Shown: positions 8,358 through 50,569 of the stretch, in pieces | Numbering within the stretch: position 1 is the first letter of the stretch | How the letters are laid out: the number at the start of each line of letters is the position of its first letter | Assembly (NCBI GenBank): GCA_002269645.1 | Contig: NIVC01004308.1 | Span: forward strand, 1-50,999 | Direction: 5' to 3' | DNA: 50,999 nucleotides | From: Macrostomum lignano | Lineage: Eukaryota | Notes under the pieces: generated by a model | Seen by the model: only the letters and a program-made list of their open reading frames with translations | Databases searched by the model: none | What the model was told of the DNA's origin: nothing | Translations under genes and position numbers: made by a program

Positions 8358-9830
8358 TTACAATGGTGCGTCCCGAACAATCGTGCCATCAGCTTTAGCA
8401 ATTGACATATATTCCTCTAGAAACAATACGTGGGCGTCAAGTGCCTGATTACCGGTTTTATTAATCTCTAACATATAATTAAGTCCAATATTGGCTACGT
8501 TTTCTTTCTGTGCCGTTAGATCATAAACAACCACTGGATGAATGTTTAGAAACTCTGTGGGTGTGTACTGAGGGACGGCATACGCTTCATTTTTGGCATA
8601 ATCTTGATAATATTTTATAAAATCATTAACATTATTATTTGCAATATTTAGATTAAGAGGATCTTTAACCGGATAATATTGATCATCAACCTGCAGGCGG
8701 ATATTCTGAACATTAAACTCGTTAATTGCAGCAACTGCGTTGTCTGTTGCGGTGGCTGCTTGTTCTGCTATGGCACCGGATTGAAGCCAATATAAATCCC
8801 CATTTGCTCTTTTACTCCTTCTATTTGTTATCTTAAACCAAACAAAAATATATCTCACCCGACGTTTTGATGTCAGTATTTGCCACTGGAATGAATCCTG
8901 ATTGTTATTAATGGTTCGCATAAAGTGTCTACGATTCAAATAAAATATTTCCTGATCATGCGTTAATTGATTATCGATGTGTTTTAAAAGCGGAGCTGTT
9001 ACCTCAATAGTTGGTACGACTAATTGAATTGAATCTATACGAACTGCTATATCGGTTGAAATTGAGGTTCCATAAAGTATCCTAGGCTGATATCCACCAG
9101 ATATTTGCAACTGTATCCCAAATTTTAATCCTTTCCATACCCGATTTGGTGAGAAGAACCCAAATAGCGGGAAGATTGAAAAGTCCTGCTCATATGCTGT
9201 TGCTGTGGTTAAAACCGCGACTGGGAATTTATTCTGACGAGCTATAAAACCTGTATTAATATCTTTTGTATTAGTCATGGTGGTTACAACTGGAACTATG
9301 TTTGTATTAAGGTAAACAATTAGCGCTGCAGTATCTGCACCGGCTGCGTTTTGTACATTAGGTAAAACTACTGCTTGCCCGTTACCTTTATCCGGCATCC
9401 ACCCAACATTATCACCAACTTGTTTTGATAAATAAGTATAATTTAAATGTTTCAAAACTCCATTAATCTCTGCGGGGTTTGATGATGTCTCAACCTCAGC
9501 ACCATTAACAGTTAGTTGAGCTTGGGAAAAACATTTATAAAACCAATCATTTTCAATTATTATTCCGGATCGATCTGCGATATCTCCGCCTGCAAGAGCA
9601 GTTCCATCATTTCTAGTATACAACCATCTAACGCGGAAAAACGCATTTTTCATATCCAATATAGTGTTGGTTGCGCCGATGTCAAAAGTTACCGTTCCAG
9701 TAGTAAAGTTATTTGAATTATCACTTGTTGGTAGGGTATAATTTAAATCGTTTGCTCTGACCTCATTAATATACTGTCGGTGCTTTTTGAAATGAAATTT
9801 ATCACTCCACATAGTTTTTGTTTCAGCCAT
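8358..9830 (-). CDS. Major capsid protein (double jelly-roll)
   Basis: 490 aa, adjacent to ATPase; AQLTVNGAEVE, RLQVDDQYYP, HPVVVYDLT motifs typical of Polinton MCP. Confidence 0.85.
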   Translation of the reverse strand: MAETKTMWSDKFHFKKHRQYINEVRANDLNYTLPTSDNSNNFTTGTVTFDIGATNTILDMKNAFFRVRWLYTRNDGTALAGGDIADRSGIIIENDWFYKCFSQAQLTVNGAEVETSSNPAEINGVLKHLNYTYLSKQVGDNVGWMPDKGNGQAVVLPNVQNAAGADTAALIVYLNTNIVPVVTTMTNTKDINTGFIARQNKFPVAVLTTATAYEQDFSIFPLFGFFSPNRVWKGLKFGIQLQISGGYQPRILYGTSISTDIAVRIDSIQLVVPTIEVTAPLLKHIDNQLTHDQEIFYLNRRHFMRTINNNQDSFQWQILTSKRRVRYIFVWFKITNRRSKRANGDLYWLQSGAIAEQAATATDNAVAAINEFNVQNIRLQVDDQYYPVKDPLNLNIANNNVNDFIKYYQDYAKNEAYAVPQYTPTEFLNIHPVVVYDLTAQKENVANIGLNYMLEINKTGNQALDAHVLFLEEYMSIAKADGTIVRDAPL

Positions 9831-9864
9831 TTTTTTAAGTTAAAAAAGTTTTTTATGTTAAAAA

Positions 9865-10535
9865 ATGAGTCAATTTATGGACGTTGATGGAGAGTTAGCG
9901 ATTTATAAAGAGAAGCAAAGATATTCTGATTTTGTTAGAAATTTACAAAAAAGAAAGTTAGGAATACAATTAGCGGGTGAAAGATTTGCTGCTCCTTTTG
10001 TTAATCCTATTACTGGGAAAATTAGTGAACTAGAAAAAACAGATAAAGATCTTCTGGAAAAAATTGCTAAAAATACTGAGCCAAAAGAGGATGAAATTTT
10101 GGATGAGCCGCCTGCTTATGATGTTGATCAAGCTCAATTGAGAGTTGCAGAGATTAGGGCTGCAGAAAGGGGTGGAGTTGATGAATATCCGAGAGCTGCA
10201 CCAACTAGTATTGCTGTGACAGATTTAGGTAATAATAATTATCGAATTGGTGGAGTTGATAAAAATCGAAATGAACTATATAGAGAATTGGGCGGAGCAT
10301 ATAATATTGTTATGAACCCTAGGGTAAAATTTAACCCTGAATTATATACTAGGGATGAATTAGTAAGTGCAAAAATTTTTTATGATGAGTTGGGAGTAAG
10401 AGCTGCTAAAAATACCAGCTTGTATAAAAGATTGTTAATTCTATAAATAACAAACCAGCTGTTGGAGAAGGATTTAAAACTCCTAGAAAACTTGTTTTAG
10501 CTGCCGCGAAAGCTGCTGGACATACTGGTGTTTAA
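9865..10535 (+). CDS. Conserved Polinton protein (putative core/PZ-like); -1 frameshift near 10440
   Basis: Intact 221-aa version in copy 2 (42210..42875); divergent from MCP; GxG-F putative protease site. Confidence 0.6.
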
Positions 10536-10562
10536 TTAATTGTTAAATTTATTTTTTATAAA

Positions 10563-11152
10563 ATGGAAACTAATAAGATTTGTACTAAGTGTAAACAAGA
10601 AAAACCGATGACGAAAGAATTTTATTTTTGGAGAAATGATTCAAAAAAATTTAGAAATGATTGTCGATCTTGTCATAATACCTCATCTGCTATTTGGATA
10701 AAAAACAATAAAGATAAATGGAATGAATATAGAAAAAATAAGTATCACACTGATGATAATTACAAACATATTGTTTTAATTAGAAATAGAATAAATTGGG
10801 CGTTGAAAAATTTTAATGACAAGGACTATATCTCATATCTTGGTTGCACAAAAGAATTCTTTTTTGATTGGTTAAATTTCACAAGAAATTATTATGTATC
10901 AAAAGATTATACTGGAAAGTTAGATATTGATCATTTCATTCCCGCTTCTTCGTTTAGTTACAAAGATGAAGATCAGATGAAAAAGTCTGAACATTGGACA
11001 AATAAAAGATACTTAACTAGCGTAGATAATAACTATAAAAAAGTTAAACAACCAACCATTGAAGAGTTTGCAAAACAATTGGTGCTTTCATGTATTTTTA
11101 AGGCTATTAAAAATGAGCAACCGAACGAAGTTCGCGTTCCTTCGGAACGATC
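10563..11152 (+). CDS. Free-standing HNH (NCLDV-type) endonuclease; ORF runs on to 11303 in this copy because of a 29-nt insert
   Basis: CTKC...CRSC zinc motif, YLGC, LDIDHFIP, HWTN...DNN HNH core. Confidence 0.8.
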
Positions 11153-12752
11153 GGGCGGAGCCGCGTGCCTTAGGCACGATCAAATAGTGTTTGAAGGAGG
11201 ATTGTTAGATGTTCAAAAAGGATTAACAAGCTTACCACCAATCTTTACTACTGGAAGGTATACTGGGGAACTACATTTACCATCAATGAACTTCACAGGT
11301 TAACCCGTGGCCTGAGTGAGGAAGGCAATGTCCTTGCTAGTCACTATTTGTGGCGACATCTCCAAATTGCGTGAAACCCGTCATACTGCTTCAAGTACCA
11401 CTTCAATTGAGAAATCTTTTGAAGGAACAGAGGTAACTCCTCTTCCCAAAGGTAAAAAGCTTGAAGACACGGTGGCAATGCGCAGCCAAGCTCCTAAGTA
11501 TTTTAAATATAAGGAGAAGGTTCAGAGAGCAGACGGAGATGGGCGGTAATTATCGCCGCTTAAGGTGTGCTCCAGCCTCTTTCGAAAGATTGAGGGTAAA
11601 CTACCCGGCACTCGCTTAGATTTGAGATTAAATCCTGATGACACCCCAAAAGCCGATTCAATTCCCATAAATGGAATTGATTGGTTAGCATACTATCATG
11701 ACTTAGCATACAGAGATGCTGATAAGAACACACCCGAGGAAGCATTAAGATTAAAACATGAAGCCGATCAAAAAATGATTCAAGGATTAGATAACTTGCA
11801 GGGATTATCGGTAGGTCAAAAATTAACTAGGTGGATGGTTAAAAAGATTCTACAATCTAAAGTTAAATTTGGTTTGGGAATTAATTATAATCAACATGGA
11901 AATAATTGTGTTGAGTGTTTGTTGTTAAGTGGCGGTGGGTTAAGTTCTGATGAGGCAAAGATTCTTCATAAAGAATATCGAAAACCTAAATTTTATAGAA
12001 AAATCATGAACTTCAAAAAGAACGAAATTTGGTATGCTGATTTAATGTCTATGCCGATCGATAAAGGATATAAATATATTTTAACCATATTAGATGGTTT
12101 TACTCGATACGCGTGGGCTGTTCCTTTGAAATCCAAAAAAGGAGAGGATGTTGCTGCTGCTTTTAGAAGTCTTGGAGAAAAAAGCGAAAGATTGTGTGTT
12201 GACGAAGGAAAAGAATTTTACAATCCTCATATGTATAAATTGTATCATTTTGAAAAAGGAAAAGAAAGGATGAAGGGCGCGAATGGGGAGTATATTAATA
12301 AAATTTATTCTATTTATGGAGAGAGTAAAAACGCATTAATAGAAAGATTTAATCGAACTTTAGGTAAGAAATTGTGGTTTCAGTTTAGTCTTAATGGAAA
12401 CCAAAAATGGGTAAAAATATTACCAGACGTTGTAAAAGATTATAACAATTCATATCATTCGGCCATAAAGATGGCTCCTCAACAAGCTTATAACAAACCT
12501 GAAAATGTTAAGGTTACTTTTGGAAAATTTGAAAAAAATAAAAAGAAATCTTTTAAGGTTGGTGATTCTGTTTATATCTATAAATGGAAAGATAAGTTTG
12601 AAAAAGGAAGAAAAGGATATTGGAAGATAAGTGAGAAATTTACTATCAGTAAAGTTTTAAATACCAATCCTACAACCTATATAATTGCTGATAAGGACGG
12701 TGAAGAAATATTGGGTTCGTTTTATGAGAACCAACTAATATCAGCGAACTAA
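11113..12752 (+). CDS. Phospholipase A2 (parvovirus-type) fused to rve integrase; exon 1 11113..11300 (frameshift at ~11160), exon 2 11604..12752
   Basis: Spliced ELHLPSMNFTG|PGTRL restores the PLA2 Ca-loop; HDLAY and D catalytic residues; integrase W.ADL, D-EGKEF, IERFNRTL (DDE). Confidence 0.9.
11301..11603 (+). ncRNA. Group I self-splicing intron, subgroup IC1-like, 303 nt, no internal homing ORF
   Basis: P1 with U-G at 5' splice site (CAGGT/GCCTG), P2, P2.1, P3 CATCTCC(11357-63)/GGAGATG(11535-41), P/Q elements AATTGCGTGAAA/AATGCGCAGC, P5abc, P6, P7 GAGAGCA(11525-31)/TGCTCC(11568-73), P8, P9 with GAAA loop, P9.0; removal restores reading frame. Confidence 0.93.
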
Positions 12753-12762
12753 GTTCGAACAA

Positions 12763-12987
12763 TTACTTGAGACAACATGGTAGTAAATTTTTTATAACAA
12801 ACAAAAACAATATTATTACAATAATTGTTACTAATATTATTATTGACATTTGTTCAACTGTTATCAAACTTAAATTTTCATTAAGTTCATTAATTGGAAC
12901 ATTTCCGATGTAGGAATAGTTTACCTTCATTTTTTTATATATATTTTTCACAATAAATGTCGTTTCTGTTATAGAATAATAGTTCAT
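12763..12987 (-). CDS. Small single-TM viral protein (74 aa)
   Basis: Hydrophobic C-terminal helix; identical in copy 2 (39788..40012). Confidence 0.6.
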   Translation of the reverse strand: MNYYSITETTFIVKNIYKKMKVNYSYIGNVPINELNENLSLITVEQMSIIILVTIIVIILFLFVIKNLLPCCLK

Positions 12988-13003
12988 TTTTTAAATATTT
13001 TTT

Positions 13004-13318
13004 TCACATAAAAATTTCACTTTCATTCTCTGAATCGCTGGTTTCATATGAACTATTTGTTGATTCGGAATCTGTTGATCTAACCTCCCAATCATCCGAA
13101 TTTAAATAATCTCCAAGTTGAAATATTAACTCACCCTCTTGTTCTAAATCAAACATCTCATCTAGCTCTAATGGATAAAGTTTTAGGTCGTGCTTGTCGT
13201 CATATTTTAAATAAACTTCATCAATTATTCCATTCAAAATATGTTGTTTTATTATCTCTGCATTTTTAGCAACAGTCTCAAAAGTATCACTAACAGAAAA
13301 GGTGTAAACTCGGGTCAT
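13004..13318 (-). CDS. Acidic hypothetical viral protein (104 aa), terminal gene
   Basis: Near-identical in copy 2 (39457..39771); AAAAATG start. Confidence 0.65.
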   Translation of the reverse strand: MTRVYTFSVSDTFETVAKNAEIIKQHILNGIIDEVYLKYDDKHDLKLYPLELDEMFDLEQEGELIFQLGDYLNSDDWEVRSTDSESTNSSYETSDSENESEIFM

Positions 13319-13372
13319 TTTTAGTAACAGAAAAAGACCCTTCGCGCCTGCGGCGCGGGCAAGGGGTTATAG

Positions 13373-13643
13373 AGTAGTAGTATAGAAAAAGACGCTTCTA
13401 GATCAGACCTTATTTTAATGGCCGTTTGTAAGGTCTTAAGAGGGGGGACGCGAGGGGGGTGTTGGGGAGTGTTTGGAAGTGTTTGGAAGTGATTTTTATT
13501 GTTAGGGGTGATTATGGGTGATTAGATGTATTAATGGTGTTTAGATGTGTTTTTTTATTTACCCCCCGTGTCCCCCCTCTAGACCCTTAAAACGGTCATT
13601 AAAAAAGTGCTCTGGGTCTAGAAGCGTCTTTTTATATACTACT
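13373..13643. repeat. Terminal region of copy 1 (TIR-side end) with internal inverted copy of the terminus
   Basis: AGTAGTAGTATAGAAAAAGACGCTTCTAGA at 13373 and TCTAGAAGCGTCTTTTTATATACTACT ending 13643; same segment at 39132..39402. Confidence 0.85.
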
Positions 13644-14000
13644 CAGATTCCCAACAATCTCACCCAGATTCCCAAAAATCTCAGCTAGATTCCGAACAAG
13701 CTCACCCAGATTCCCAACAAGCTCACCCAGATTCCCAAAAATCTCACCCAGATTCTCAACAACCTCACCCAGATTCCCAAAAATCTCACCCAGATTCTCA
13801 ACAACCTCACCCAGATTCCCAAAAATCTCACCCAGATTCCCACAAATCTCACCCAGATTCCCAAAAATCTCACCCAGATTCCCACAAATCTCACCCAGAT
13901 TCTCAACAACCTCACCCAGATTCCCAAAAATCTCACCCAGATTCTCAACAACCTCACCCAGATTCCCAACAATTTCACCCAGATTCCCAACAATCTCACC
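13644..14000. repeat. 21-bp minisatellite (CACCCAGATTCCCAACAATCT), insertion site of copy 1
   Basis: Direct tandem units visible. Confidence 0.9.
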
Positions 14001-14029
14001 AAGAGTATATCAATCTCATCAATCCGCAG

Positions 14030-15154
14030 AACCTCCTTGGCGGCGCGCTGTTCGGCCTTGCGCGCGGTTTTCCTCTGTGCTGCTTGCTGACAGCCTGCGG
14101 CGCCACCGGCTGCTACCTGATGTCGCGCCACTTCGGCAAGCGCCTGGTTGAGCGGGCTTTTCACAGGCGCCTGGAGCCGCTGCGCCGGCGAGTGCAGCAA
14201 AATCGGCGCTCCCTGTTCGCTATGCTGCTGTCCCTGCGCCTGTTCCCCATGTCGCCCAACTGGTTTCTCAACATGGCCTCGCCGCTACTGGGCGTACCGC
14301 TGCTCCACTTCTTCCCCTCCGTGTTTCTCGGTGAGAATTTTATTGCTGCATTCATTGAATGTAATCGAGTCATGCAGTGTCTAGAGCACTCCAGTCATGC
14401 AGTGTCTAGAGCACTCCAGTCATGCAGTGTCTAGAGCACTCCAGTCATGCAGTGTCTAGAGCACTCCAGTCATGCAGTGTCTAGAGCACTCCAGTCATGC
14501 AGTGTCTAGAGCACTCCAGTCATGCAGTGTCTAGAGCACTCCAGTCATGCAGTGTCTAGAGCACTCCAGTCATGCAGTGTCTAGAGCACTCCAGTCCTTC
14601 AGTGTCTAGAGCACTCCAGTCATTCAGTGTCTAGAGCACTCCAGTCATGCAGTGTCTAGAGCACTCCAGTCATGCAGTGTCTAGAGCACTCCAGTCCTTC
14701 AGTGTCTAGAGCACTCCAGTCATTCAGTGTCTAGAGCACTCCAGTCATGCAGTGTCTAGAGCACTCCAGTCATGCAGTGTCTAGAGCACTCCAATATTTA
14801 CAGTAAAATCAGTAAATGGGTCGTGGAAAGATTTCCACTACTGTGGAATGCGCTTATTAAGTCACTTATTAAACATGCATTTCGCAGTATTGATAGCAAT
14901 ATATACGAGTACAAATTACAAATCTCCCTTTGGCAGGCCTAATGCCATACAATTTCATCACGGTCGAAGCCGGCTGCATGCTCAGCAGTTTAACCTCAAT
15001 CAGCGACCTGTTCTCAACGGGCACCATGTTGAAACTCACCGTCTTGTCCGGCCTTGTGGCCGCGTTTGTCTTGCTAAAAAGGCGTTACGCCTCCCCTGAA
15101 ACCTTGAGGCAGTCGGAGTACAGCGACGGCCTCCTAAATGGAAAGGGGCTATGA
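14030..15154 (+). CDS. TMEM41A: TMEM41A-like (VTT/DedA family) gene, last two exons 14030..14330 and 14937..15154
   Basis: NLLGGALFG...GATGCYLMS...LRLFPMSPNWFLNMASPLLGVP...G|LMPYNFI matches TMEM41A; AG/GT sites with matching phase 1. Confidence 0.85.
14368..14792. repeat. 25-bp minisatellite (CCAGTCATGCAGTGTCTAGAGCACT, ~17 copies) in TMEM41A intron
   Basis: Direct tandem units with near-palindromic AGTGTCTAGAGCACT core. Confidence 0.92.
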
Positions 15155-19950: not shown

Positions 19951-27003
<7,053 letters not shown>

Positions 27004-28060: not shown

Positions 28061-28656
28061 GACTGTGTAACAATATGTGTCAACAAAGATGATAAAAAAG
28101 ATTCATAAAACCATTTTCTTCAGTCCTTGGATGCTGCAAAATGGGTGACCTAAAACTTGAAATTAGAAATTTCACATGTAAACTTGTACCGTCTACCGTC
28201 CGTCTATCTATTGAATAGTTTACAATGATGGGCATCAGGAACGCAAGGACCACCAAAACACAACACACAAGGATTGCTAGGGACACAAGGACCCCTAAGA
28301 ACACAAAGATTGCTAGAGATGCAAGACCGCTAAAACGCAAGGATTGCTAGGCTCAAGGACCGCTAAGAACTAGATGATTATGTGAAACACAATCACAAGA
28401 ATATACAAGTATTCGCAAGAACTTCAAGAAGAGCGCCAGGAGTCAATGAGCAAGAGATCAGTTAAATTTCAGTATTTTAATATTAGCTACCTTATTTAAT
28501 TCTAAGTGCATAAAATTGGTTGTTAAGCGTTTAATAAGGCCATTAACTGTACAAGACCTTTTTTAGCTTCGTGTAATTGGTTAATTCAAGTTTCCTTTGT
28601 TCAAAATACTATTCACAGTTCTCCTGACATAGAAAAAGTTATAGTGCATGGCTGTG

Positions 28657-29362
28657 TTGGTAGGAAACAGGGAGTGACCTACCGGTGTATGGTGGCGTTG
28701 GTAGGAAACAGGGAGTGACCTACCGGTGTATGGTGGCGTTGGTAGCAAACAGGGAGTGACCTACCGGTGTATGGTGGCGTTGGTAGCAAACAGGGAGTGA
28801 CCTACCGGTGTATGGTGGCGTTGGTAGGAAACAAGGAGTGACCTACCGGTGTATGGTGGCGTTGGTAGGAAACAAGGAGTGACCTACCGGTGTATGGTGG
28901 CGTTGGTAGGAAACAAGGAGTGACCTACTGGTGTATGGTGGCGTTGGTAGGAAACAGGGAGTGACCTACCGCTGTATGGTGGAGTTGGTAGGAAACAGGG
29001 AGTGACCTACCGGTGTATGGTGGCGTTGGTAGGAAACAAGGAGTGACATACCGGTGTATGGTGGCGTTGGTAGGAAACAAGGAGTGACCTACCGGTGTAT
29101 GGTGGCGTTGGTAGGAAACAGGGAGTGACCTACCGGTGTATGGTGGCGTTGGTAGGAAACAGGGAGTGACCTACCGCTGTATGGTGGCGTTGGTAGGAAA
29201 CAAGGAGTGACCTACCGGTGTATGGTGGCGTTGGTAGGAAACAGGGAGTGACCTACCGGTGTATGGTGGCGTTGGTAGGAAACAGGGAGTGACCTACCGC
29301 TGTATGGTGGCGTTGGTAGGAAACAGGGAGTGACCTACCGGTGTATGGTGGCGTTGGTAGGA
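28657..29362. repeat. 41-bp minisatellite (GGTAGGAAACAGGGAGTGACCTACCGGTGTATGGTGGCGTT, ~17 copies)
   Basis: Head-to-tail units without spacers. Confidence 0.92.
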
Positions 29363-29745
29363 ATTAGGGACCACCCTGTGCAAGTGTTTTGGGATAACAG
29401 AAAACCATGATTAAACCACTTAATAGGCTTTTTCTCAGAAAAAAACATGATTGGCAATAAAACAACAGCGAGTGTTCCATACTACTATCTAAGCGCGAAA
29501 AAAGTAGTCAGACGAGAATGTGCAGCGTCAAGAAACAACTAACAATAGTAAATTCCTATTTTTGATTGTGTATGAGAAAAAGCATAGCGATGACGGCACT
29601 ATAAAGTACAAATAATAAGACGCAGGCTCCGGGCTCAGTTACCAAGTGAAAATCAACGATTTGGCGGCTCTCTATGATGCCGAATTCGAAGCATCTTGAA
29701 TCACTGGTTGAAGACATTGGAGTTTCACTGACGGGTGAGTCTGGC

Positions 29746-32675
<2,930 letters not shown>

Positions 32676-33964: not shown

Positions 33965-34428
33965 GGGTGGGTTTCACAAACGCGAAATTTCATAACCGCT
34001 AAAAGCACTTGCTTTCATAAACGCGAAACTTCACAAACGCGAAACTTCACAACCGCTAACTTTTTTGCAGTCACTTTCATGAACGCGAAACTTCACAACC
34101 GCGAAACTTCACAACCGCTAAATCACCTACTTTCATAAGCGCTAAATTTCATAAACGCGAAACTTCACAACCGCGAAACTTCACAAACGCGAAACTTCAC
34201 AACCGCTAAATGTCATCTACTTTCACAAACGCGAAACTTCACAACCGCTAAATGTCATCTACTTTCACAACCGCGAAACTTCACAACCGCTAAAAATTTT
34301 GCACATACTTTCAAATACTGCAGTCTTTTTAGCGGTTGTGAAGTTTCGCGTTTATGAAAGTGACTGCAAAAAAATCAGCGGTTGTGAAGTTTCGCGGTTG
34401 TGAAATTTCGCGTTTGTGAAAGCAACCC
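33965..34428. mobile_element. Non-autonomous foldback/MITE-like DNA transposon with internally repetitive arms
   Basis: ~35-bp TIR GGGT(G/T)G(G/C)TTTCACAAACGCGAAATTTCA; AACCGCGAAACTTCAC subrepeats on both arms; imperfect 8-bp TSD TTTATGGA/TCTTTGGA. Confidence 0.7.
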
Positions 34429-38314: not shown

Positions 38315-38397
<83 letters not shown>

Positions 38398-39131
38398 GAT
38401 AGATAGACTAGTGTGCGGATAGATAGACTAGTGTGTGAATAGATGGACTAGTGCGTGAATAGATAGACTAGTGTGTGAATAGATGGACTAGTGTTCGTGG
38501 ATAGATAGACTAGTGTGTGAATAGATGGACTAGTGTTCGTGAATAGATGGACTAGTGTGTGAATAGATGGACTAGTGTTCGTGAATAGATGGACTAGTGT
38601 GTGAATAGATGGACTAGTGTTCGTGGATAGATAGACTAGTGTGTGAATAAATGGACTAGTGTGTGAATAGATGGACTAGTGTTCGTGAATAGATAGACTA
38701 GTGCGTGAATAGATGGACTAGTGTTCGTGAATAGATGGACTAGTGTGTGAATAGATGGACTAGTGTGTGAATAGATAGACTAGTGTGTGAATAGATGGAC
38801 TAGTGTGCGTGAATAGATAGACTAGTGTGTGAATAGATAGACTAGTGTGCGTGAATAGATGGACTAGTGTGCGTGAATAGATGGACTAGTGTGTGAATAG
38901 ATGGACTAGTGTACGTGAATAGATGGACTAGTGTGCGTGAATGGATAGACGAGTGTGCAGTGAGCTCTCAAATACCAGTACGTAGATCTTGGATAATAAA
39001 AGAGGTTCTCACCCGGAGAGTGCCGGAAGTAGGTCACGCAGGCCTGGGAGACGCTGTTCCGGCTTAACTCATCCGGGATCTCGCTGAGACGATTGAGCCT
39101 CAGGTTAAAGAAGTCCCGCTTAGTGTGCATG
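38135..39131 (-). CDS. 3' end of an unidentified host gene: exon 39131-39013 (cut by Polinton copy 2) and last exon 38202-38135
   Basis: G|GTGAG donor at 39012 and CAG|GC acceptor at 38203 are phase-matched, giving ...TYFRHSPGAMRAIKECLAELETQDAADED*. Confidence 0.65.
38318..38950. repeat. (CT)n(GT)n microsatellite followed by 20-24-bp minisatellite (GGACTAGTGTGTGAATAGAT) in host intron
   Basis: Direct. Confidence 0.9.
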
Positions 39132-39456
39132 AGTAGTATAGAAAAAGACGCTTCTAGACCCAGAGCACTTTTTTAATGACCGTTTTAAGGGTCTAGAGGG
39201 GGGACACGGGGGGTAAATAAAAAAACACATCTAAACACCCTTAACACATCTAATCACCCATAATCGCCCCTGACAATAAAAATCACTTCCCAACACTTCC
39301 AAACACTCCCCAACACCCCCCTCGCGTCCCCCCTCTTAAGACCTTACAAACGGCCATTAAAATAAGGTCTGATCTAGAAGCGTCTTTTTCTATACTACTA
39401 CTCTATAACCCCTTGCCCGCGCCGCAGGCGCGAAGGGTCTTTTTCTGTTACTAAAA

Positions 39457-39771
39457 ATGACCCGAGTTTACACCTTTTCTGTTAGTGATACTTTTGAGAC
39501 TGTTGCTAAAAATGCAGAGATAATAAAACAACATATTTTGAATGGAATAATTGATGAAGTTTATTTAAAATATGACGACAAGCACGACCTAAAACTTTAT
39601 CCATTAGAGCTAGATGAGATGTATGATTTAGAACAAGAGGGTGAGTTAATATTTCAACTTGGAGATTATTTAAATTCGGATGATTGGGAGGTTAGATCAA
39701 CAGATTCCGAATCAACAAATAGTTCATATGAAACCAGCGATTCAGAGAATGAAAGTGAAATTTTTATGTGA
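39457..39771 (+). CDS. Acidic terminal viral protein (copy 2)
   Basis: Homologue of 13004..13318. Confidence 0.65.
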   Translation: MTRVYTFSVSDTFETVAKNAEIIKQHILNGIIDEVYLKYDDKHDLKLYPLELDEMYDLEQEGELIFQLGDYLNSDDWEVRSTDSESTNSSYETSDSENESEIFM

Positions 39772-39787
39772 AAAAAATATTTAAAAA

Positions 39788-40012
39788 ATGAACTATTATT
39801 CTATAACAGAAACGACATTTATTGTGAAAAATATATATAAAAAAATGAAGGTAAATTACTCCTACATCGGAAATGTGCCGATTAATGAACTTAATGAAAA
39901 TTTAAGTTTGATAACAGTTGAACAAATGTCAATAATAATATTAGTAACAATAATAGTAATAATATTGTTTTTGTTTGTAATAAAAAATTTACTACCATGT
40001 TGTCTTAAGTAA
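39788..40012 (+). CDS. Small single-TM viral protein (copy 2)
   Basis: Homologue of 12763..12987. Confidence 0.6.
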   Translation: MNYYSITETTFIVKNIYKKMKVNYSYIGNVPINELNENLSLITVEQMSIIILVTIIVIILFLFVIKNLLPCCLK

Positions 40013-40022
40013 CTGTTTGAAC

Positions 40023-41633
40023 TTAGTTCGCAGACATTATCTGGTTCTCATAAAAAGAACCCAATATTTCTTCACCGTCCTTATCAGCAATTATATAGGT
40101 TGTAGGATTGGTATTTAAAACTTTACTGATAGTAAATTTCTCACTTATCTTCCAATATCCTTTTCTTCCTTTTTCAAACTTATCTTTCCATTTATAGATA
40201 TAAACAGAATCACCAACCTTAAAAGATTTCTTTTTATTTTTTTCAAATTTTCCAAAAGTAACTTTAACGTTTTCAGGATTGTTATAAGCTTGTTGAGGAG
40301 TCATCTTTATCGCCGAATGATATGAATTGTTATAATCTTTCACTACGTCTGGTAATATTTTTACCCACTTTTGGTTACCATTAAGACTAAACTGAAACCA
40401 TAATTTCTTACCTAAAGTTCTATTAAATCTTTCTATTAATGCGTTTTTACTCTCTCCATAAATAGAATAAATTTTATTAATATACTCCCCATTCGCGTCT
40501 TTTTTCCTTTCTTGTCCTTTTTCAAAATGATATAATTTATACATATGAGGATTGTAAAATTCTTTTCCTTCGTCAACACACAAACGTTCGCTTTTTTCTC
40601 CAAGACTTCTAAAAGCAGCAGCAACATCCTCTCCTTTTTTGGATTTCAAAGGAACAGCCCACGCGTATCGAGTAAAACCATCTAATATGGTTAAGATATA
40701 TTTATATCCTCTTTCGTTCGGCATCGACATTAAATCAGCATACCAAATTTCATTCTTTTTGAAGTTCATGATTTTTCTATAAAATTTCGGTTTTCGATAT
40801 TCTTTATGAAGAATCTTTGCCTCATCAGAACTTAACCCACCACCACTTAACAACAAACACTCAACACAATTATTTCCATGTTGATTATAATTAATTCCCA
40901 AACCAAATTTAACTTTAGACTGCAAGATCTTTTTAACCATCCACCTAGTTAATTTTTGACCTACCGATAATCCCTGCAAGTTATCTAATCCTTGAATCAT
41001 TTTTTGATCGGCTTCATGTTTTAATCTTAATGCTTCCTCGGGCGGGTTCTTGTCAGCATCTCTATATGCTAAGTCGTGATAGTATGCTAACCAATCAATC
41101 CCATTTATTGGAATTGAATCAGATTTTGGAGTATTGTCAGGATTTAATCTCAAATCTAAGCGAGTGCCGGGTAGTTTACCCTCAATCTTTCGAAAGAGGC
41201 TGGAGCACACCTTAAGCGGCGATAATTACCGCCCATCTCCGTCTGCTCTCTGAACCTTCTCCTTATATTTAAAATACTTAGGAGCTTGGCTGCGCATTGC
41301 CACCGTGTCTTCAAGCTTTTTACCTTTGGGAAGAGGAGTTACCTCTGTTCCTTCAAAAGATTTCTCAATTGAAGTGGTACTTGAAGCTGTATGACGGGTT
41401 TCACGCAATTTGGAGATGTCGCCACAAATAGTGACTAGCAAGGACATTGCCTTCCTCACTCAGGCCACGGGTTAACCTGTGAAGTTCATTGATGGTAGGT
41501 GTAGCTCACCCGTATACCTCCCAGTAGTAAATATTGGTGGTAAGCTTGTTAATCCTTTTTGAACATCTAAAAATCCTCCTTCAAATACTAATTGATCGAA
41601 CCTGCGGTTCGCGAACTTCGTTCGGTTGCTCAT
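40023..41633 (-). CDS. PLA2-rve integrase fusion (copy 2); exon 1 41633-41475, exon 2 41171-40023, open after splicing
   Basis: AAAAATG MSNRTKF...NFTG | PGTRL...HDLAY...DDE integrase. Confidence 0.9.
41172..41474 (-). ncRNA. Group I intron (IC1-like), copy 2, 303 nt
   Basis: Reverse complement differs from 11301..11603 at one position (CATACTGC vs CATACAGC) by manual comparison. Confidence 0.93.
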
Positions 41634-42182
41634 TTTTAATAGCCTTAAAAATACATGAAAGCACCAATTGTTTCGCAAATTCTTCAATTGTTGGTTGTTT
41701 AACTTTTTTATAGTTATTATCTACGCTAGTTAAGTATCTTTTATTTCTCCAATTTTCAGACTTTTTAATCTGATCATCGTCTTTGTAACTAAATGAAGAA
41801 GCGGGGATGAAATGATCAATATCTAACTTTCCAGTATAATCTTTTGATACATAATAATTTCTTGTGAAATTTAACCAATCAAAAAAGAATTCTTTTGTGC
41901 AACCAAGATATGAGATATAGTCCTTGTCATTAAAATTTTTCAACGCCCAATTTATTCTATTTCTAATTAAAACAATATGTTTGTAATTATCATCAGTGTG
42001 ATACTTATTTTTTCTATATTCATTCCATTTATCTTTATTGTTTTTATCCAAATAGCAGATGAGGTATTATGACAAGATCGACAATCATTTCTAAATTTTT
42101 TTGAATCATTTCTCCAAAAATAAAATTCTTTCGTCATCGGTTTTTCTTGTTTACACTTAGTACAAATCTTATTAGTTTCCAT
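41581..42182 (-). CDS. HNH endonuclease (copy 2), one frameshift near 42045
   Basis: Split over ORFs 41967..42182 and 41581..42051. Confidence 0.78.
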
Positions 42183-42209
42183 TTTATAAAAAATAAATTT
42201 AACAATTAA

Positions 42210-42875
42210 TTAAACACCAGTATGTCCAGCAGCTTTCGCAGCAGCTAAAACAAGTTTTCGTGGTGTTTTAAATCCATCACCAACAGCTGGTTTGTTATTT
42301 ATAGAATTAACAATCCTTTTATACAAGCTGGTATTTTTAACAGCTCCTCCTAACTCATCATAAAAAATTCTAGCACTTATTAATTCATCCCTAGTATATA
42401 AATCAGGGTTAAACTTTACCCTAGGGTTCATAACAATATTATATGCTCCACCCAATTCTCTATATAGTTCATTTCGATTTTTATCAACTCCACCAATTCG
42501 ATAATTATTATTACCTAAATCTGTCGCAGCAATACTAGCTGGTACTCTTGGATATTGTTCCCGATCGCCCCGCTCTGCACGTCTAATCTCTGCAATTCTC
42601 AATTGTGCTTGATCAACATCATAAGCAGGCGGCTCATCCAAAATTTCATCCTCTTTTGGCTCCGTATTTTTAGCAATTTTTTCCAGAAGATCTTTATCTG
42701 TTTTTTCTAGTTCACTAATTTTCCCAGTAATAGGATTAACAAAAGGAGCAGCAAATCTTTCACCCGCTAATTGTATTCCTAACTTTCTTTTTTGTAAATT
42801 TCTAACAAAATCAGAATATCTTTGCTTCTCTTTATAAATCGCTAACTCTCCATCAACGTCCATAAATTGACTCAT
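42210..42875 (-). CDS. Conserved Polinton core/PZ-like protein (copy 2, 221 aa)
   Basis: Homologue of 9865..10535. Confidence 0.6.
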   Translation of the reverse strand: MSQFMDVDGELAIYKEKQRYSDFVRNLQKRKLGIQLAGERFAAPFVNPITGKISELEKTDKDLLEKIAKNTEPKEDEILDEPPAYDVDQAQLRIAEIRRAERGDREQYPRVPASIAATDLGNNNYRIGGVDKNRNELYRELGGAYNIVMNPRVKFNPDLYTRDELISARIFYDELGGAVKNTSLYKRIVNSINNKPAVGDGFKTPRKLVLAAAKAAGHTGV

Positions 42876-42909
42876 TTTTTAACATAAAAAACTTTTTTAA
42901 CTTAAAAAA

Positions 42910-44382
42910 ATGGCTGAAACAAAAACTATGTGGAGTGATAAATTTCATTTCAAAAAGCACCGACAGTATATTAATGAGGTCAGAGCAAGAGATTTAAATT
43001 ATACCCTACCAACAAGTGATAATTCAAATAACTTTACTACTGGAACGGTAACTTTTGACATCGGCGCAACCAACACTATATTGGATATGAAAAATGCGTT
43101 TTTCCGCGTTAGATGGTTGTATACTAGAAATGATGGAACTGCTCTTGCAGCCGGAGATATCGCAGATCGATCCAGAATAATAATAGAAAATGATTGGTTT
43201 TATAAATGTTTTTCCCAAGCTCAACTAACTGTTAATGGTGCTGAGGTTGAGACATCATCAAACCCCGCAGAGATTAATGGAGTTTTGAAACATTTAAATT
43301 ATACTTATTTATCAAAACAAGTTGGTGATAATGTTGGGTGGATGCCGGATAAAGGTAACGGGCAAGCAGTAGTTTTCCCTAATGTACAAAACGCAGCCGG
43401 TGCAGATACTGCAGCGCTAATTGTTTACCTTAATACAAACATAGTTCCAGTTGTAACCACTATGACTAATACAAAAGATATTAATACTGGTTTTATAGAT
43501 CGTCAGAATAAATTCCCAGTCGCGGTTTTAACCACAGCAACAGCATATGAGCAGGACTTTTCAATCTTTCCACTATTTGGGTTTTTCTCACCAAATCGGG
43601 TATGGAAAGGATTAAAATTTGGGATACAGTTGCAAATATCTGGTGGATATCAGCCTAGGATACTTTATGGAACCTCAATTTCAACCGATATAGCAGTTCG
43701 TATAGATTCAATTCAATTAGTCGTACCAACTATTGAGGTAACAGCCCCACTTTTAAAACACATCGATAATCAGTTAACGCATGATCAGGAAATATTTTAT
43801 TTGAATCGTCGACATTTTATGCGAACCATTAATAATAACCAGGATTCATTCCAGTGGCAAATACTGACATCAAAACGTCGGGTGAGATATATTTTTGTTT
43901 GGTTTAAGATAACAAATAGAAGGAGTAAAAGAGCAAATGGGGATTTATATTGGCTTCAATCCGGTGCCATAGCAGAACAAGCAGCCACCGCAACAGACAA
44001 TGCGGCTGCAGCTATTAACGAGTTTAATGTTCAGAATATCCGCCTGCAGGTTGATGATCAATATTATCCGGTTAAAGACCCCCTAAATTTAAATATAGCA
44101 AATAATAATGTTAATGATTTTATAAAATATTATCAAGATTATGCTAAAAATGAAGCGTATGCCGTCCCTCAGTACACACCCACAGAGTTTCTAAACATTC
44201 ATCCAGTGGTTGTTTATGATCTAACGGCACAGAAAGAAAACGTAGCCAATATTGGACTTAATTATATGTTAGAGATTAATAAAACCGGTAATCAGGCACT
44301 TGACGCCCACGTATTGTTTCTAGAGGAATATATGTCAATTGCTAAAGCTGATGGCACGATTGTTCGGGACGCCCCGCTGTAA
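42910..44382 (+). CDS. Major capsid protein (copy 2)
   Basis: Near-identical to 8358..9830. Confidence 0.85.
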   Translation: MAETKTMWSDKFHFKKHRQYINEVRARDLNYTLPTSDNSNNFTTGTVTFDIGATNTILDMKNAFFRVRWLYTRNDGTALAAGDIADRSRIIIENDWFYKCFSQAQLTVNGAEVETSSNPAEINGVLKHLNYTYLSKQVGDNVGWMPDKGNGQAVVFPNVQNAAGADTAALIVYLNTNIVPVVTTMTNTKDINTGFIDRQNKFPVAVLTTATAYEQDFSIFPLFGFFSPNRVWKGLKFGIQLQISGGYQPRILYGTSISTDIAVRIDSIQLVVPTIEVTAPLLKHIDNQLTHDQEIFYLNRRHFMRTINNNQDSFQWQILTSKRRVRYIFVWFKITNRRSKRANGDLYWLQSGAIAEQAATATDNAAAAINEFNVQNIRLQVDDQYYPVKDPLNLNIANNNVNDFIKYYQDYAKNEAYAVPQYTPTEFLNIHPVVVYDLTAQKENVANIGLNYMLEINKTGNQALDAHVLFLEEYMSIAKADGTIVRDAPL

Positions 44383-44431
44383 GCGGCGCAGGTCTCCGAC
44401 CGTCGCGCCTATTTAAATTATTTCTTTAAAA

Positions 44432-45190
44432 ATGGTAAAGCAAAACACGATAAGATATTTCCAAATGATCCTTTTCTTTGTTTAGTAATCGGAGGATCAG
44501 GTAAAGGAAAAACACACTTTGTTTACGATTTATTAACAACAGATGGAATGTTAGACTATAATAATTTAATAATTTATACTAATAAACCTAGAATAAAATA
44601 TTATGAATTTCTTAAACATGGATTAAAAAACAAATTAAAAAAAGATGTCTTGTTTAGAATGTTAAGAGCATATGAGCAATATGAGGATGATGACGAACCG
44701 CGATTTAATCTAGCAGACATTGAGGATTTATGTAAAACAATGGCACAACAGCCAGAAAACATCACCGATCGCGCCCCAACTGTTAGAGTATCAACCCGAT
44801 TAGCCTATGATCAAATTCCAAAACATGATAAAACACTAATTATTTTTGATGATTGTATTAATGACGGTGATCAAGAATTGCAAAAGGAAATTTTTGTTAG
44901 TGGTAGAGGAGATGGAATCGGAGCTTTTTATCTAACACAGTCTTTTAGAGAATTAGAATCGATTATAAAAAAGAATGCAAGTTGTTGTGTAATGTTTGAT
45001 TTAGATAATTATGATTTACAAAATATTCACGCGAGATTTAATCCCGGATTGGATGCAAAACCATTTAAAAGTATGTGTAAAAAAATTTGGGATGATAGCC
45101 AATACAAACATATTTATATCAATCCGAGGTTAGAAAGGAAAAATCGAATTTAAAAGATTTATAAAAGAAGACGATGAGGAAGAAGAATAA
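44432..45190 (+). CDS. A32 packaging ATPase (copy 2), frameshifts near both ends
   Basis: GGSGKGKT, IIFDDC; lacks the 30-nt insert of copy 1. Confidence 0.88.
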
Positions 45191-45204
45191 TTCCCACTAT
45201 AAAA

Positions 45205-45990
45205 ATGGCTACAAATTTAAATACTATAAAACAATTGGTAGATCGAACTAATTCAAAATTTAGTACAACATTACAGTTTATAATGACAACCAGCGAGCAA
45301 CGGATTCAATTGCGCGATCCATTACAACTTGATCAAAGCCTAAGTTATCAAATAGGTTTAATACTATTTTCGGTTTTCAACATGCCTCAATTAATTAATG
45401 CAACAAATAATCAATTTAGATATTCTAAAGATTCCGGAGCCAATTGGACAACATTTAGCGTTAACCCAGGAGCGTATAGCTATACTGATTTGAATGCTTA
45501 TATAGAAGGAGAATTAACAACTAATGGTGATTGGGTAGCAGGAGCAATTGTTATAGGTGTTGATTTACCGTCTGGCAGATTCACACTATCACTAGGATCC
45601 GGATATCAGGTTGATTTCACAATTGCAAATTCACTCAGAACCATACTTGGATTTAATTCCCGAATAGTTACCACATCAAGCACCGGTGATACAGTTGGAA
45701 ATATAGAGGGTGGAGTAAATACAATTAATATAACAACCGACATTTCAAACGGTGGTTATATAACAGACGATAACGGAGTTTTGGTTCAACGTGGAATTAT
45801 TTATTCAATCCCATTTCTTGCTGTTCCAATTGGAGAGAAAATGATTGTATCACCTCAAACCCCAATATATTACCCATTAAATCAATATAATGTTCAATCA
45901 ATTTATATTAGGATTGTAGATGAAAGCGATAGATTAATAAGTTTTGGTGGGCAATCAATAACAATAATTTTACGTATAAAACAGGTTTGA
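45205..45990 (+). CDS. Minor capsid protein (copy 2)
   Basis: Homologue of 6621..7406. Confidence 0.85.
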   Translation: MATNLNTIKQLVDRTNSKFSTTLQFIMTTSEQRIQLRDPLQLDQSLSYQIGLILFSVFNMPQLINATNNQFRYSKDSGANWTTFSVNPGAYSYTDLNAYIEGELTTNGDWVAGAIVIGVDLPSGRFTLSLGSGYQVDFTIANSLRTILGFNSRIVTTSSTGDTVGNIEGGVNTINITTDISNGGYITDDNGVLVQRGIIYSIPFLAVPIGEKMIVSPQTPIYYPLNQYNVQSIYIRIVDESDRLISFGGQSITIILRIKQV

Positions 45991-46198
45991 TCGAACCTTT
46001 GGTGTCGTAAAAATGGGTAATAATAATAATAATAATAATTAATAAAAAAACAATCAGAAAAAGTTAAAAAAGCTGAAGATAATTACGAACTAGAACTAGC
46101 AAAATTAAGGCAGTTACAAGCTGATAAAATAAGAAAGGAATTGTTAAAACCCACACCTACGAAACTAACTAAAACCAAGAGTTTTTCAGGAACATAAA

Positions 46199-46660
46199 AT
46201 GACCATGACGTGGGATGATTTTAAACAAAGATATGGAACGGACACAACAAGCAATATCGAATTAACAAATTGGGCGAGGCAGTTAAAAATAAAACCATTC
46301 AGATGTGTTATGCGAGATGAGATAAAAGACTTACCAAATATGGATGTTTCATTGTTAATATTGAAACAACAAAAGAAAATGGTGTTCATTGGTCAGCAGT
46401 TTATTCAAAACCAAAACTTGTTTATTTTTTTGATTCATACGCGCTTCCTCCGTTACAGGAAATAAAAGATAAATTTAATCATACTAAAAATCGTTTATGT
46501 GGAGATCATCACGAACAATTTCAAACATTTGATAAAAGTTATTGCGGGCAAGCGCGTTGTATTTTTTATATAAAATTAATAACTCGAAGGAAACCCGAAG
46601 ATTTAGTATCATGCAAAGCATGCGTGCCGATGGCACGATTTTAGACTCTATAAAATAGAC
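46199..46660 (+). CDS. Adenain-like protease (copy 2), frameshifted at sites different from copy 1
   Basis: VHWSAV, YFFDSY, YCGQ in shifting frames. Confidence 0.8.
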
Positions 46661-46668
46661 AGTAAAAA

Positions 46669-48715
46669 ATGTTATTTTCTGGAACACCCTCATGGAACGG
46701 AACAACAAGTAGTGGTGGTGGTGGCACATCTGGTGGAATAAGTGTTACATTTGGAGATAATCGATATATTAATGAAGATGAAGGTTATAAAAAAACTGAA
46801 ATTGATAATAAATTAAATTTAAAAAGAAATGTTGCAGATTCCTATACTAAAACTCAAATAGATGATTCACTAAATCTGAAACGGAACGTAGCCGATTCCT
46901 ATACCAAAACCGAAGTTGATAATTCATTAAATTTAAAACGCAATACAGCCGATTCTATACCAAAACCGAAGTTGATAATTCATTAAATTTGAAACGGAAC
47001 GTAGCCGATTCTTATACAAAAACCGAAGTTGATAATTCATTAAATTTGAAACGGAACGTAGCCGATTCTTATACCAAAACCGAAGTTGATAATGGATTAA
47101 ATTTAAAAAGAGATGTAACTGATTCTTATTCTCGAACTGATTCTGATTCACGTTATGTTCAAACCACCGCAACCGGAAACCTAGATATGAGCAACAACCG
47201 AATTATAAATGTTTCAATTACAACTAGTGATTCAGTGGTTGATAAGAACTATGTCGATAATCAAGTTGCCACTCGTAGTGGTAATATTAATATGAATAAT
47301 TTTAAATTAACAAATTTATTATTTGGAACAGAGAACGCAGACTCGATAACTCTAGGCCAAGTAAACGAGCGAGCTAATGCAACCGACGCCGATATTTTTA
47401 CCACGCCGCTTACATCAAATACTTCAAATCCTGATGTTGTTCTTACAGCATCTGAAAATGGCAACACAGCTTTTCGAGTTGGAGATGGAAGCCTTGCGAC
47501 ACAATGGTCACCAAATACCGGAACCACAACCAATATGGAAATTCAATTTGAATTTTTAGGTTATAATAGAAGAATATTTGAATTAAGAATTACAGGCAGT
47601 GAAACAATTGAGATACCCTCGGGGTGGTCGGTTCGCGCAAAAAATGTTGCTACCGATTCATGGACGACATTAACTACGTCGGGATCACCAGTTCAAGCAA
47701 CATCATTTGCTCTATCTAATTTAACGACTAATTTTTGGAAATATTATAGCGTATTCTTCCCAACTGGTGGTACCGGTACACAACCTATCGAGGTTCGTCA
47801 AATACAATTATTTGAACACCGTGTTGAAATTCAAGATCTTAATTGGCCAACTCAAATACTTTCTGCAGTTCCGCGAGCGTACGTAGATCAGCTAGCTACT
47901 CCAACATCAAATGGTAGAATGTCTGGAAGCGATAAAAATAAATTGGATGGAATACCTGCTATTGATGCGGCCTTGTTCGAACCAGTAATTTGCAATTGGT
48001 CTGGATATCAAAATCCAACAACCGCCGGAGATATATATCCAGTCGGTTCTTTAATTGGTGACGCTTCTTATATCGATTATCAAAATGGAGCTAGAATTAC
48101 TCGTGAAACCGCAGGTGTAAGTGGGGCTTTACAATTTAATTTCACACATTTTCAAAATATATCTGCGTCTTTCTTTTCCGAGTTGCTAATTCTACAGGAG
48201 ATGGTGCAGATGCGGTTTGGTTTTATGCATATTGTCACGAACGTCCAACATCGGAATTTGGAACTGGATTATCAACCGACGCCGGGCTGATAGTGTTTGC
48301 TAGTGAGTGGACTGATAGGTTTGGAGTTGTTTGGAGTAATAAAAAATCAGACGGATCTACGGTTCGTAACGATGTTAGTAGTGATGCGGATCAAACTGTA
48401 GCCTATGCTAATATTGATAACGGCGATTGGCATTTATTTGAAGTTAATATTTTAAATCAAAGGGTTTGGTACCGATTACAGTCATACAATGTTGCTGGTG
48501 ATTCTTTTACCCTCATTGGACAGAACGTTTTCACATATGATAGTGGAACTTGGGGAACTTTAGATAAATCTGGAACCCTTATGGGTTTTGGTGCTCGAAC
48601 TGGTGGAGCGGATGCTGCACATTTTATTCGTGGTGCAGTTGTATGTGGTAGTACGTCGTTTGGTTATGTTTTTCCCTCTACTGCTTATTTGGAAAAACCT
48701 CCTACTCAAATATAA
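46669..48715 (+). CDS. Fibre/receptor-binding protein (copy 2), frameshifted
   Basis: Split over ORFs 46669..46986, 46989..48290, 48293..48715. Confidence 0.7.
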
Positions 48716-49058
48716 AATATTTATATATAAAATATTTCTATATAAAATGGCTTTTAGTAGAACTCCATCGATGCGGCAAAATAATGTTATTATTCCTATT
48801 CCTAAACAAGAATCAAATATAAAAACATTCAAATCTCATACCAAATTTTTATTTAGTACTGTAAATGTTCAGGATAATAAGAAGCTTCAAGAATTAATTA
48901 AGTTATTAAAAAATCATATTATACTTCAAGAGTTTTGGAAAATAGGATTTAAATGGGAGAAAAAAGAAAGAATAACTCCAATACAATACCTATTGAGCTC
49001 GGGACAAATCCCCAAAGAGCGCGGGAATTCATTTTGGTGCTATTAAAAATAGACGAGA

Positions 49059-49697
49059 ATGTCGGTATCTGAAGCAGATAAATGGGAACGCGACCGGTTC
49101 AACCAACGTAAAGGCCAGATGTTAAGTAATGTTGATCGTATTAACTATGATTATGATTTATATGCTAAAAAAGTAAGAAGAGTTTCAAACCATATAAGAA
49201 ATATGGACTTTTTCAATATTGGATTTGGAAGCTTATCAATGTTATGTGTAATCGTTTTAGGTATTTTACAATCTATTCCAACTCTTAATTTATCTCAATT
49301 ATTTTTAGGTATTTCAATTGGCTCAATATCAGGTTTTGAATTGATCAGGAACTTATCAATACTTTTAGCAATTAAATTATATCTTAAAAAAAGAAAGGAA
49401 AAATATAAATCTTTAAGAGATGTTGCAAAACAATATAAAAATCAATTATATTTATATGTGCAAAAAATATTGGATGACGGAGAGATAACGATTCATGAAT
49501 TATCAACCGCGGTTGAATTATATGAAAAATATTTAAAAGATAGAAATAGAATTTTAGATGTTGAAACTTTTACCGATATGGAATTAAAAGAGTTGAGACT
49601 CGATAAACCCAAAGCTCCACCGATAGAAACATTAGGTATTTACGAACCTGAAACTATTGCTACTGGGGCACAAAGCCCGCGGTCAGGAAGTGCGTAG
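49059..49697 (+). CDS. GasderminX-like 2-TM protein (copy 2, 212 aa)
   Basis: Homologue of 2746..3573. Confidence 0.55.
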   Translation: MSVSEADKWERDRFNQRKGQMLSNVDRINYDYDLYAKKVRRVSNHIRNMDFFNIGFGSLSMLCVIVLGILQSIPTLNLSQLFLGISIGSISGFELIRNLSILLAIKLYLKKRKEKYKSLRDVAKQYKNQLYLYVQKILDDGEITIHELSTAVELYEKYLKDRNRILDVETFTDMELKELRLDKPKAPPIETLGIYEPETIATGAQSPRSGSA

Positions 49698-50194
49698 AAC
49701 TTCAGGTTGTTTAGTTTTTCTAATGCATATGTTATATATTCTTCCCAAAGTGGTAACTCTCTTCTGATCCTAGGTTTAAATTTTTTATCAATACATAAAA
49801 ATTCCAATGACTTTTTCAATAACATTTCGTTAGGTATGTTACCTATCCTTATAAACTTTGTATTCTCTCGAATAAGAAAATTGAAATAATATCCAACTAA
49901 AATTAAAATCCTTTCAGAGTCTTTCGAACTTAATCCCTTTCCTTTATTTAAATGGAAAAAGTTATTATATAAATAAACATTATTTCCGGGAATTAAAATT
50001 GGATCAGAAATGTCTCTTGTAAGATTTCTTAAAATTGTGTTTTTAAAATAGTAATATGAGTTTTCAATCTTTTTTGTTTTTTCAAATTGATATATTTTAG
50101 AACATGAATAACACATATGATATATATCTCCGTTTGCTGTTTGCCCTCTGTGCATAGTCACATTACATTTATTACAAACATAAATGTCTTTCAT
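49640..50194 (-). CDS. Zinc-ribbon hypothetical protein (copy 2)
   Basis: Homologue of 2441..2992. Confidence 0.65.
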   Translation of the reverse strand: MKDIYVCNKCNVTMHRGQTANGDIYHMCYSCSKIYQFEKTKKIENSYYYFKNTILRNLTRDISDPILIPGNNVYLYNNFFHLNKGKGLSSKDSERILILVGYYFNFLIRENTKFIRIGNIPNEMLLKKSLEFLCIDKKFKPRIRRELPLWEEYITYALEKLNNLKFYALPDRGLCAPVAIVSGS

Positions 50195-50221
50195 TTTTTT
50201 TGTTATTTTTTTAGATTAAAA

Positions 50222-50554: not shown

Positions 50555-50569
50555 ATTTTTTATAAGAAA

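Follow-up and report, generated by a model that had tools for sequence, protein, structure and literature searches.

The element and its host DNA

The window, meaning the whole 50,999-nucleotide stretch of Macrostomum lignano contig NIVC01004308.1 that was analysed, contains two inverted copies of a virus-like element, separated by host DNA. Its large-scale features are as follows.

1-13645, forward strand: element copy A; its right end, at 13645, abuts host DNA, and its left end was not found in the window
3906-5948, reverse strand: 681-codon open reading frame (ORF) with tandem repeats of about 57 nt (5487-5831) and weak matches to phage tail-fibre profiles
7476-8270, reverse strand: A32-type packaging ATPase (Pox_A32, 28.9 bits, above the cut-off)
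8358-9830, reverse strand: 490-codon ORF, a capsid candidate
13646-39129, no strand assigned: host DNA between the copies, with minisatellites, a MAP-kinase-family gene and a Macrostomum lignano-like ORF
21875-27003, reverse strand: multi-exon MAP-kinase-family gene, between the copies
30548-31579, reverse strand: host ORF matched only by Macrostomum lignano proteins (best identity 81%)
39130-50999, reverse strand: element copy B, inverted relative to copy A, cut by the end of the window and about 97% identical to copy A

The preliminary description of this DNA called the element a Polinton. The presence of an rve integrase and an A32-type ATPase agrees with that name, but the polymerase B gene does not appear: no family B DNA polymerase was matched among the ORFs of positions 1-13645, the 13.6 kb of the element that can be seen. 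As the element continues leftwards out of the window, this gene may lie beyond it. Similarly, no terminal inverted repeat was found within the window, which holds one end per copy. The 490-aa capsid candidate matched no profile, and its single-sequence structural model was unusable (pLDDT 29), while the product of the 681-codon ORF may serve the element as a fibre or spike. Positions 1-4000, on the left of copy A, are markedly AT-rich, with a GC content of 28%, and three ORFs in the left part of this copy (621-1715, 2746-3573 and 3560-4129) had no profile match. Eight proteins from the window were searched for in the protein collection, and none had an exact match there.

The two copies form a mosaic. 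When 1626-13645 is compared with 39130-50999, stretches with 5-9% divergence are interspersed with identical runs, the longest being 752 nt (4531-5282), a pattern that suggests recombination or gene conversion, either between lineages of the element or between the copies themselves.

The contig had been taken to be of animal origin, and this is borne out by the MAP-kinase-family gene and the M. lignano-like ORF that lie between the element copies; as Macrostomum is a flatworm, the host belongs to the Bilateria. The two copies share their terminal base, and the host sequence beyond it differs from one copy to the other. Therefore the window contains two separate element-host junctions, at 13645 and 39130. 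The alternative is that the element lies outside any animal genome, with the contig being a chimera or a contaminant that carries a virus of a symbiont, say, or of an organism eaten by the worm. Laboratory cultures of flatworms receive algae as food, ENA and Logan assemblies are the source of the nearest relatives, and the GC content is 28-37% in the element compared with 45-63% in its flanks, all of which would be compatible with such an origin. However, the shared end base in two different host contexts, the flatworm-like genes between the copies on the same contig, and the named relatives of the integrase in insect genome annotations each argue against it, making contamination or chimerism a very improbable explanation for an element that appears to be integrated in flatworm DNA.

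The host segment is packed with minisatellites with units of 20-42 nt (13644-14004, 14368-14793, 28656-29370 and 38391-38957, among others), one of which is directly abutted by copy A. A sub-threshold Rfam match to the plant microRNA MIR1878 (34260-34360, reverse strand; 43 bits, relative to a cut-off of 70) falls in this repeat-rich host DNA beside tandem arrays, and was taken to have arisen by chance.

A group I intron in the PLA2-integrase gene

Near the right end of copy A lies a gene for a protein with a phospholipase A2 (PLA2)-like domain and an integrase core, interrupted by an insert that recurs in copy B. The parts of this gene are listed below.

10563-11300, forward strand: exon 1 ORF, 246 codons in three parts
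10563-11114, forward strand: first part of exon 1, a complete HNH-type nuclease of 184 codons (PHROG 1035)
11120-11176, forward strand: second part of exon 1, a GC-rich palindromic stretch that joins the nuclease in frame to the N-terminus of the PLA2-integrase
11178-11300, forward strand: third part of exon 1, the N-terminal 41 codons of the PLA2-integrase
11301-11603, forward strand: group I intron of copy A, 303 nt, with bounds set by colinearity with intron-less relatives
11604-12752, forward strand: exon 2, carrying the remainder of the PLA2-like domain as well as the rve integrase core
about 11661-11825, forward strand: region of the PLA2-like H-D dyad, in exon 2
about 12015-12221, forward strand: rve integrase core (PF00665, 1.2e-7)
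40023-41171, reverse strand: exon 2 of copy B, intact, with 49 substitutions relative to copy A
41172-41474, reverse strand: group I intron of copy B (RF00028, 62.2 bits), with one substitution in 303 nt relative to copy A
41475-42182, reverse strand: exon 1 of copy B, with three frame-shifting indels that break it in comparison with copy A

Exon 2 has 828 relatives, mostly combining PF08398 with PF00665 and typically 380-500 aa in length. The PLA2 calcium loop is divided between the exons and the H-D dyad lies in exon 2; when exon 2 was considered alone, the match to PF08398 was partial, covering profile positions 21-72 of 80 with a score of 19 bits (cut-off 23.9). Parvovirus-type PLA2 domains are known from animal adintoviruses and Polintons (PMC8502044), which resemble this locus in that the domain occurs in an animal element with an rve integrase and a packaging ATPase. 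However, in that work the PLA2 domain is fused to a pX-like tail (PLA2X), with no intron reported, whereas here and in the 828 relatives it is mostly fused to the integrase.

Colinearity was judged exon by exon, with each exon searched separately against the relatives. The last 32 codons of exon 1 correspond to residues 1-32 of the relative P0273 (69% identity, E 3e-17), and exon 2, from 11604, aligns with this intron-less protein from residue 33 onwards. Hence the removal of exactly 11301-11603 restores colinearity, in agreement with the earlier proposal that the codons of the PLA2 calcium loop are split precisely by a 303-nt insert. That proposal had suggested looking for intron-less alleles among the Polinton PLA2 genes of related hosts, and intron-less relatives do exist: P0273, with P0001, is the closest relative of exon 2 (71% identity) and is uninterrupted, and the 54 relatives listed with a complete N-terminus all run through the insertion site without a break. 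The length of the insert is a multiple of three (303 = 3 x 101), both exons are in the same reading frame, and the first three bases of the insert are a stop codon, which ends the exon 1 ORF. The PLA2-integrase part has no ATG of its own in exon 1, and the fusion of the HNH nuclease to the PLA2-integrase was absent from the uninterrupted relatives. Between the copies, exon 2 differs by 49 substitutions without any indels or stop codons, with a pN/pS of about 0.10, and is therefore under purifying selection.

The covariance model for group I introns, RF00028, matches both inserts with scores above its gathering cut-off of 50 bits. In copy A, the match extends over 11291-11594 on the forward strand (62.1 bits, E 2.3e-15, in a 600-nt scan) and covers the whole model; in copy B, it extends over 41181-41484 on the reverse strand (62.2 bits, E 1.8e-13, in a whole-window scan with an E-value threshold). 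The covariance search that had been proposed as a check on the group I assignment is thus significant. The default whole-window Rfam scan at the gathering threshold missed both copies because of its speed filters, with laxer filters recovering both. This initial silence is what a chance resemblance, an unrelated structured sequence, or an ordinary spliceosomal intron would predict, but the E-values obtained with laxer filters, and the scores exceeding a curated cut-off, are contrary to it. Furthermore, no GT..AG pair would excise 303 nt and keep the phase, nor is there any freedom to shift the boundaries; neither GT..AG nor AT..AC spliceosomal boundaries would explain the colinearity with the relatives. 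The RF00028 matches to both copies refute this alternative, to which a negligible probability is attached, and the insert is a real group I intron: a known kind of intron in an unusual host. A search against a phage collection returned nothing beyond a 48-nt match of the core to Brochothrix phages.

The fold supports the same assignment. Helix pairing was checked base by base, on the basis of two near-identical copies (one difference in 303 nt), and every helix named in the preliminary description is present. P1 has all seven of its pairs, with a U.G wobble (U11300.G11310) at the 5' splice site; the conserved U-G of the RF00028 model aligns on this same pair, therefore the 5' splice site lies where it was originally placed. 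The core from P3 to P8 is present with the P3/P7 pseudoknot, in which P3 has seven of seven pairs and P7 six of six, with a bulged A at 11526 adjoining the G11527-C11572 pair, which is the established guanosine pocket of such introns. An unconstrained energy fold by itself yields P2, P2.1, P3, P4, P5, a three-way P5a/b/c, P6/6a, P8 and P9. P8 is very short, GAAA loops cap P5b and P9, and the P5abc-type extension carries an A-rich bulge.

Introns of the IC1 type are marked by having P2 together with P2.1, an A-rich bulge in P5abc, and GAAA caps to P5b and P9. The insert has the IC1-type peripheral helices P2.1 and P5abc, a fit that is one of architecture rather than of a score against a subgroup model. 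It shares with the IC1 introns of nuclear rDNA (the Tetrahymena type) P2 and P2.1, the three-way P5abc with its A-rich bulge, and GAAA on P5b and P9, but differs from them in lying in a protein-coding message rather than in rRNA, in lacking P9.1 and P9.2, in the very short P8, and in having no terminal G at the colinear boundary. The full reading is held with good confidence: this is probably an ORF-less group I intron of 303 nt, with P2/P2.1 and a three-way P5abc-type extension, inserted where a PLA2-integrase gene encodes the calcium loop of its PLA2-like domain, within a Maverick/Polinton-like (adintovirus-like) element that is present as two inverted copies in the genome of a Macrostomum flatworm.

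The 3' splice site

Three independent lines set the 3' splice site at 11603|11604. Firstly, this is the boundary at which exon 2 becomes colinear with uninterrupted relatives. Secondly, four of the first five pairs of P10 form between 11604-11608 and 11309-11305, which on a rough estimate has a probability of about 7% by chance. Thirdly, both pairs of P9.0 form for this boundary. The guide at 11305-11314 is complementary to the intron-less junction over ten bases, spanning both exon flanks, with one mismatch and one wobble.

However, base 11603, the last of the insert, is not a G in either copy, and the guanosine that the family has as its last intron base is consequently missing from this position in copies A and B. 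The terminal G of RF00028 instead aligns at 11594, nine nucleotides upstream of the insert end. The nearest guanosines, 11594-11596, have no support from P10 or P9.0. The absence of a terminal guanosine at the very boundary demanded by colinearity, P10 and P9.0 leaves the claim of a complete, self-splicing intron unproven, and in this respect the preliminary description went too far. A changed specificity of the ribozyme is not suggested, as the pocket pair in P7 is ordinary. Judging by sequence, it is doubtful that the second step, exon joining, occurs at the colinear site in these two copies, and both may no longer join their exons cleanly.

The missing guanosine could be accommodated if splicing occurred at G11594, with nine in-frame bases being kept and three extra residues being inserted in the calcium loop. 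The last position of the model aligns there with high posterior probability, an intron ending there would be 294 nt, again a multiple of three, and the three codons are conserved in length, with one residue changed, in the lineage of P0003 and P0026. Conversely, P10 is absent for this site (two wobble pairs of six), as is P9.0; the energy fold has G11594 paired within the P9 stem; it is the flank at 11604 that the guide matches; and none of the 54 uninterrupted relatives has extra residues at this position. Splicing at G11594 is therefore rated as improbable relative to the boundary at 11603|11604. A 3' site at 11596 was also considered and rejected, as it would lead to an immediate stop codon and leave the colinearity unexplained.

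If the intron were active, excision would be expected to proceed by the two usual transesterifications, started by a free guanosine bound in P7. After excision, the phospholipase loop and the integrase would be translated from one message.

Intron distribution and the upstream nuclease

The insertion site differs in its occupancy between related elements. The N-termini of P0003 and P0026 are a reading of the last 13 codons of the intron, of which 12 are identical to those in the window, with the exon 2 of these proteins being only 58% identical to that in the window. The nine-base tail of the intron is read in both proteins with one residue changed, and is therefore part of the inserted unit. 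Yet P0275, a member of the same 90% cluster as P0003 with 88% identity to it beginning at the junction, has no interruption. Hence some lineages carry an insert at this site while their near relatives do not, as would be expected of a mobile intron, and the intron may spread among related elements by homing.

Two further observations concern the same site. In a third lineage, the start of the predicted proteins P0024 and P0055 falls exactly one codon ahead of the junction, a hint of an insert in this position. In the protein P0037, a short additional segment directly precedes the junction motif and resembles the residues read over the 3' tail of the intron and the junction; this may be a footprint or a coincidence. 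Such N-terminal truncations and odd starts, found in many PLA2-integrase predictions (P0003, P0026, P0024 and P0055), may be artefacts of introns, and call for caution in annotation.

Between the two copies in the window, the intron differs at one of 303 bases, compared with about 3.5% in its flanks (P 2.8e-4). This near-identity was rejected as a signal of homing, as the copies form a mosaic with identical runs reaching 752 nt, and many runs of 300-750 nt are identical elsewhere.

The HNH gene, which ends about 190 nt upstream of the intron, is complete and fused in frame to the PLA2-integrase. This part matches the PHROG 1035 profile for endonuclease VII/HNH (3.5e-8), and an exhaustive search found 3487 relatives, of which the best has 49% identity over its full length and most are free-standing proteins with 170-230 aa; a word-based search with exon 1 and a PDB sequence search returned nothing. 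The residues D123, H124, N147 and N156, together with four zinc cysteines in a CxxC..CxxC arrangement, are present here and kept in at least 90% of 38 sequences. The predicted structure of the HNH domain has a pLDDT of 95, and its best viral fold matches are mimivirus L246, a Bodo saltans virus 'intron encoded endonuclease' and phage HNH proteins; its matches to PDB folds are weak (best E 0.07), though mostly to HNH domains. The nuclease is likely to be the homing enzyme of the intron, acting in trans in the manner of the free-standing homing nucleases beside ORF-less introns of phages and giant viruses. It is accordingly named here as a candidate by analogy, with the link between nuclease and intron resting on their being neighbours in one element. 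Three frameshifting indels disrupt the HNH frame of copy B.

Two viral systems offer parallels for this arrangement. Bodo saltans virus has group I introns with HNH or GIY-YIG homing nucleases, as well as ORF-less 'offspring' introns in essential genes, which are thought to need a nuclease provided in trans (PMC5871332). The HNH fold is similar to that found here, but in the giant virus the parental nuclease lies inside an intron, whereas the HNH gene of this locus stands apart from the intron and is joined in frame to the exon before it, in an element about 100 times smaller. In phage collaborative homing, as far as it is described in a later paper that cites the 2009 work (PMC11296320), an ORF-less intron likewise accompanies an adjacent nuclease gene, with intron-plus and intron-less alleles in close relatives. 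This locus differs in being a eukaryotic virus-like element, in which the cleavage of the intron-less site by HNH is putative.

The closest parallels among small viruses come from protists. RF00028 matches were published in 2025 from polinton-like viruses integrated in Paulinella micropora, Desmodesmus armatus and Rhodomonas lacustris (PMC12220804), which leaves the earlier statement that group I introns are not described from Polintons without support. As here, a group I intron of about 300-380 nt, matched by the same Rfam model, lies in a gene of a small integrated virus; this likeness is one of description, and the hosts are protists, whereas the present intron interrupts a PLA2-integrase gene in a bilaterian animal. 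The introns in Rhodomonas are found in a short gene beside the capsid gene, rather than in a PLA2-integrase. According to a 2024 review, group I introns are absent from metazoans, save for non-bilaterian lineages and a few sharks (PMC10964413), and the literature search found no report of group I introns in animal Polintons or in Macrostomum, nor of Polintons in Macrostomum.

The significance of this locus is therefore that it represents a well-formed group I intron in flatworm nuclear DNA, where it arrived as part of an integrated virus-like element. The preliminary description proposed that a DNA virus had carried a protist-type ribozyme into the animal genome, which is one possible origin of the intron. 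Self-splicing introns and HNH nucleases are known as partners in phages, giant viruses and the polinton-like viruses of protists, and this locus, in which the nuclease is a candidate partner, adds animal Polinton-like viruses to that range. A much stronger proposition would be that viruses of this type infecting animals harbour a group I intron that is active and mobile, is served by an HNH homing nuclease acting in trans, and is spliced from a polymerase II message in animal nuclei. This is regarded as rather unlikely. If true, it would be the first group I intron working in bilaterian nuclear gene expression, and homing would serve competition between co-infecting viruses, as has been proposed for giant viruses. 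The locus is a concrete place at which host RNA can show whether a group I ribozyme acts in an animal nucleus.

The palindromic stretch that separates the nuclease from the PLA2-integrase (11120-11176) stands out in its base composition, with 63% GC in surrounding DNA of 30-37% GC, and folds into small hairpins; copy B differs from copy A by indels in this stretch. A look-alike of this palindrome, matching over 15-19 nt, occurs at 7425-7474, in the gap between two other genes.
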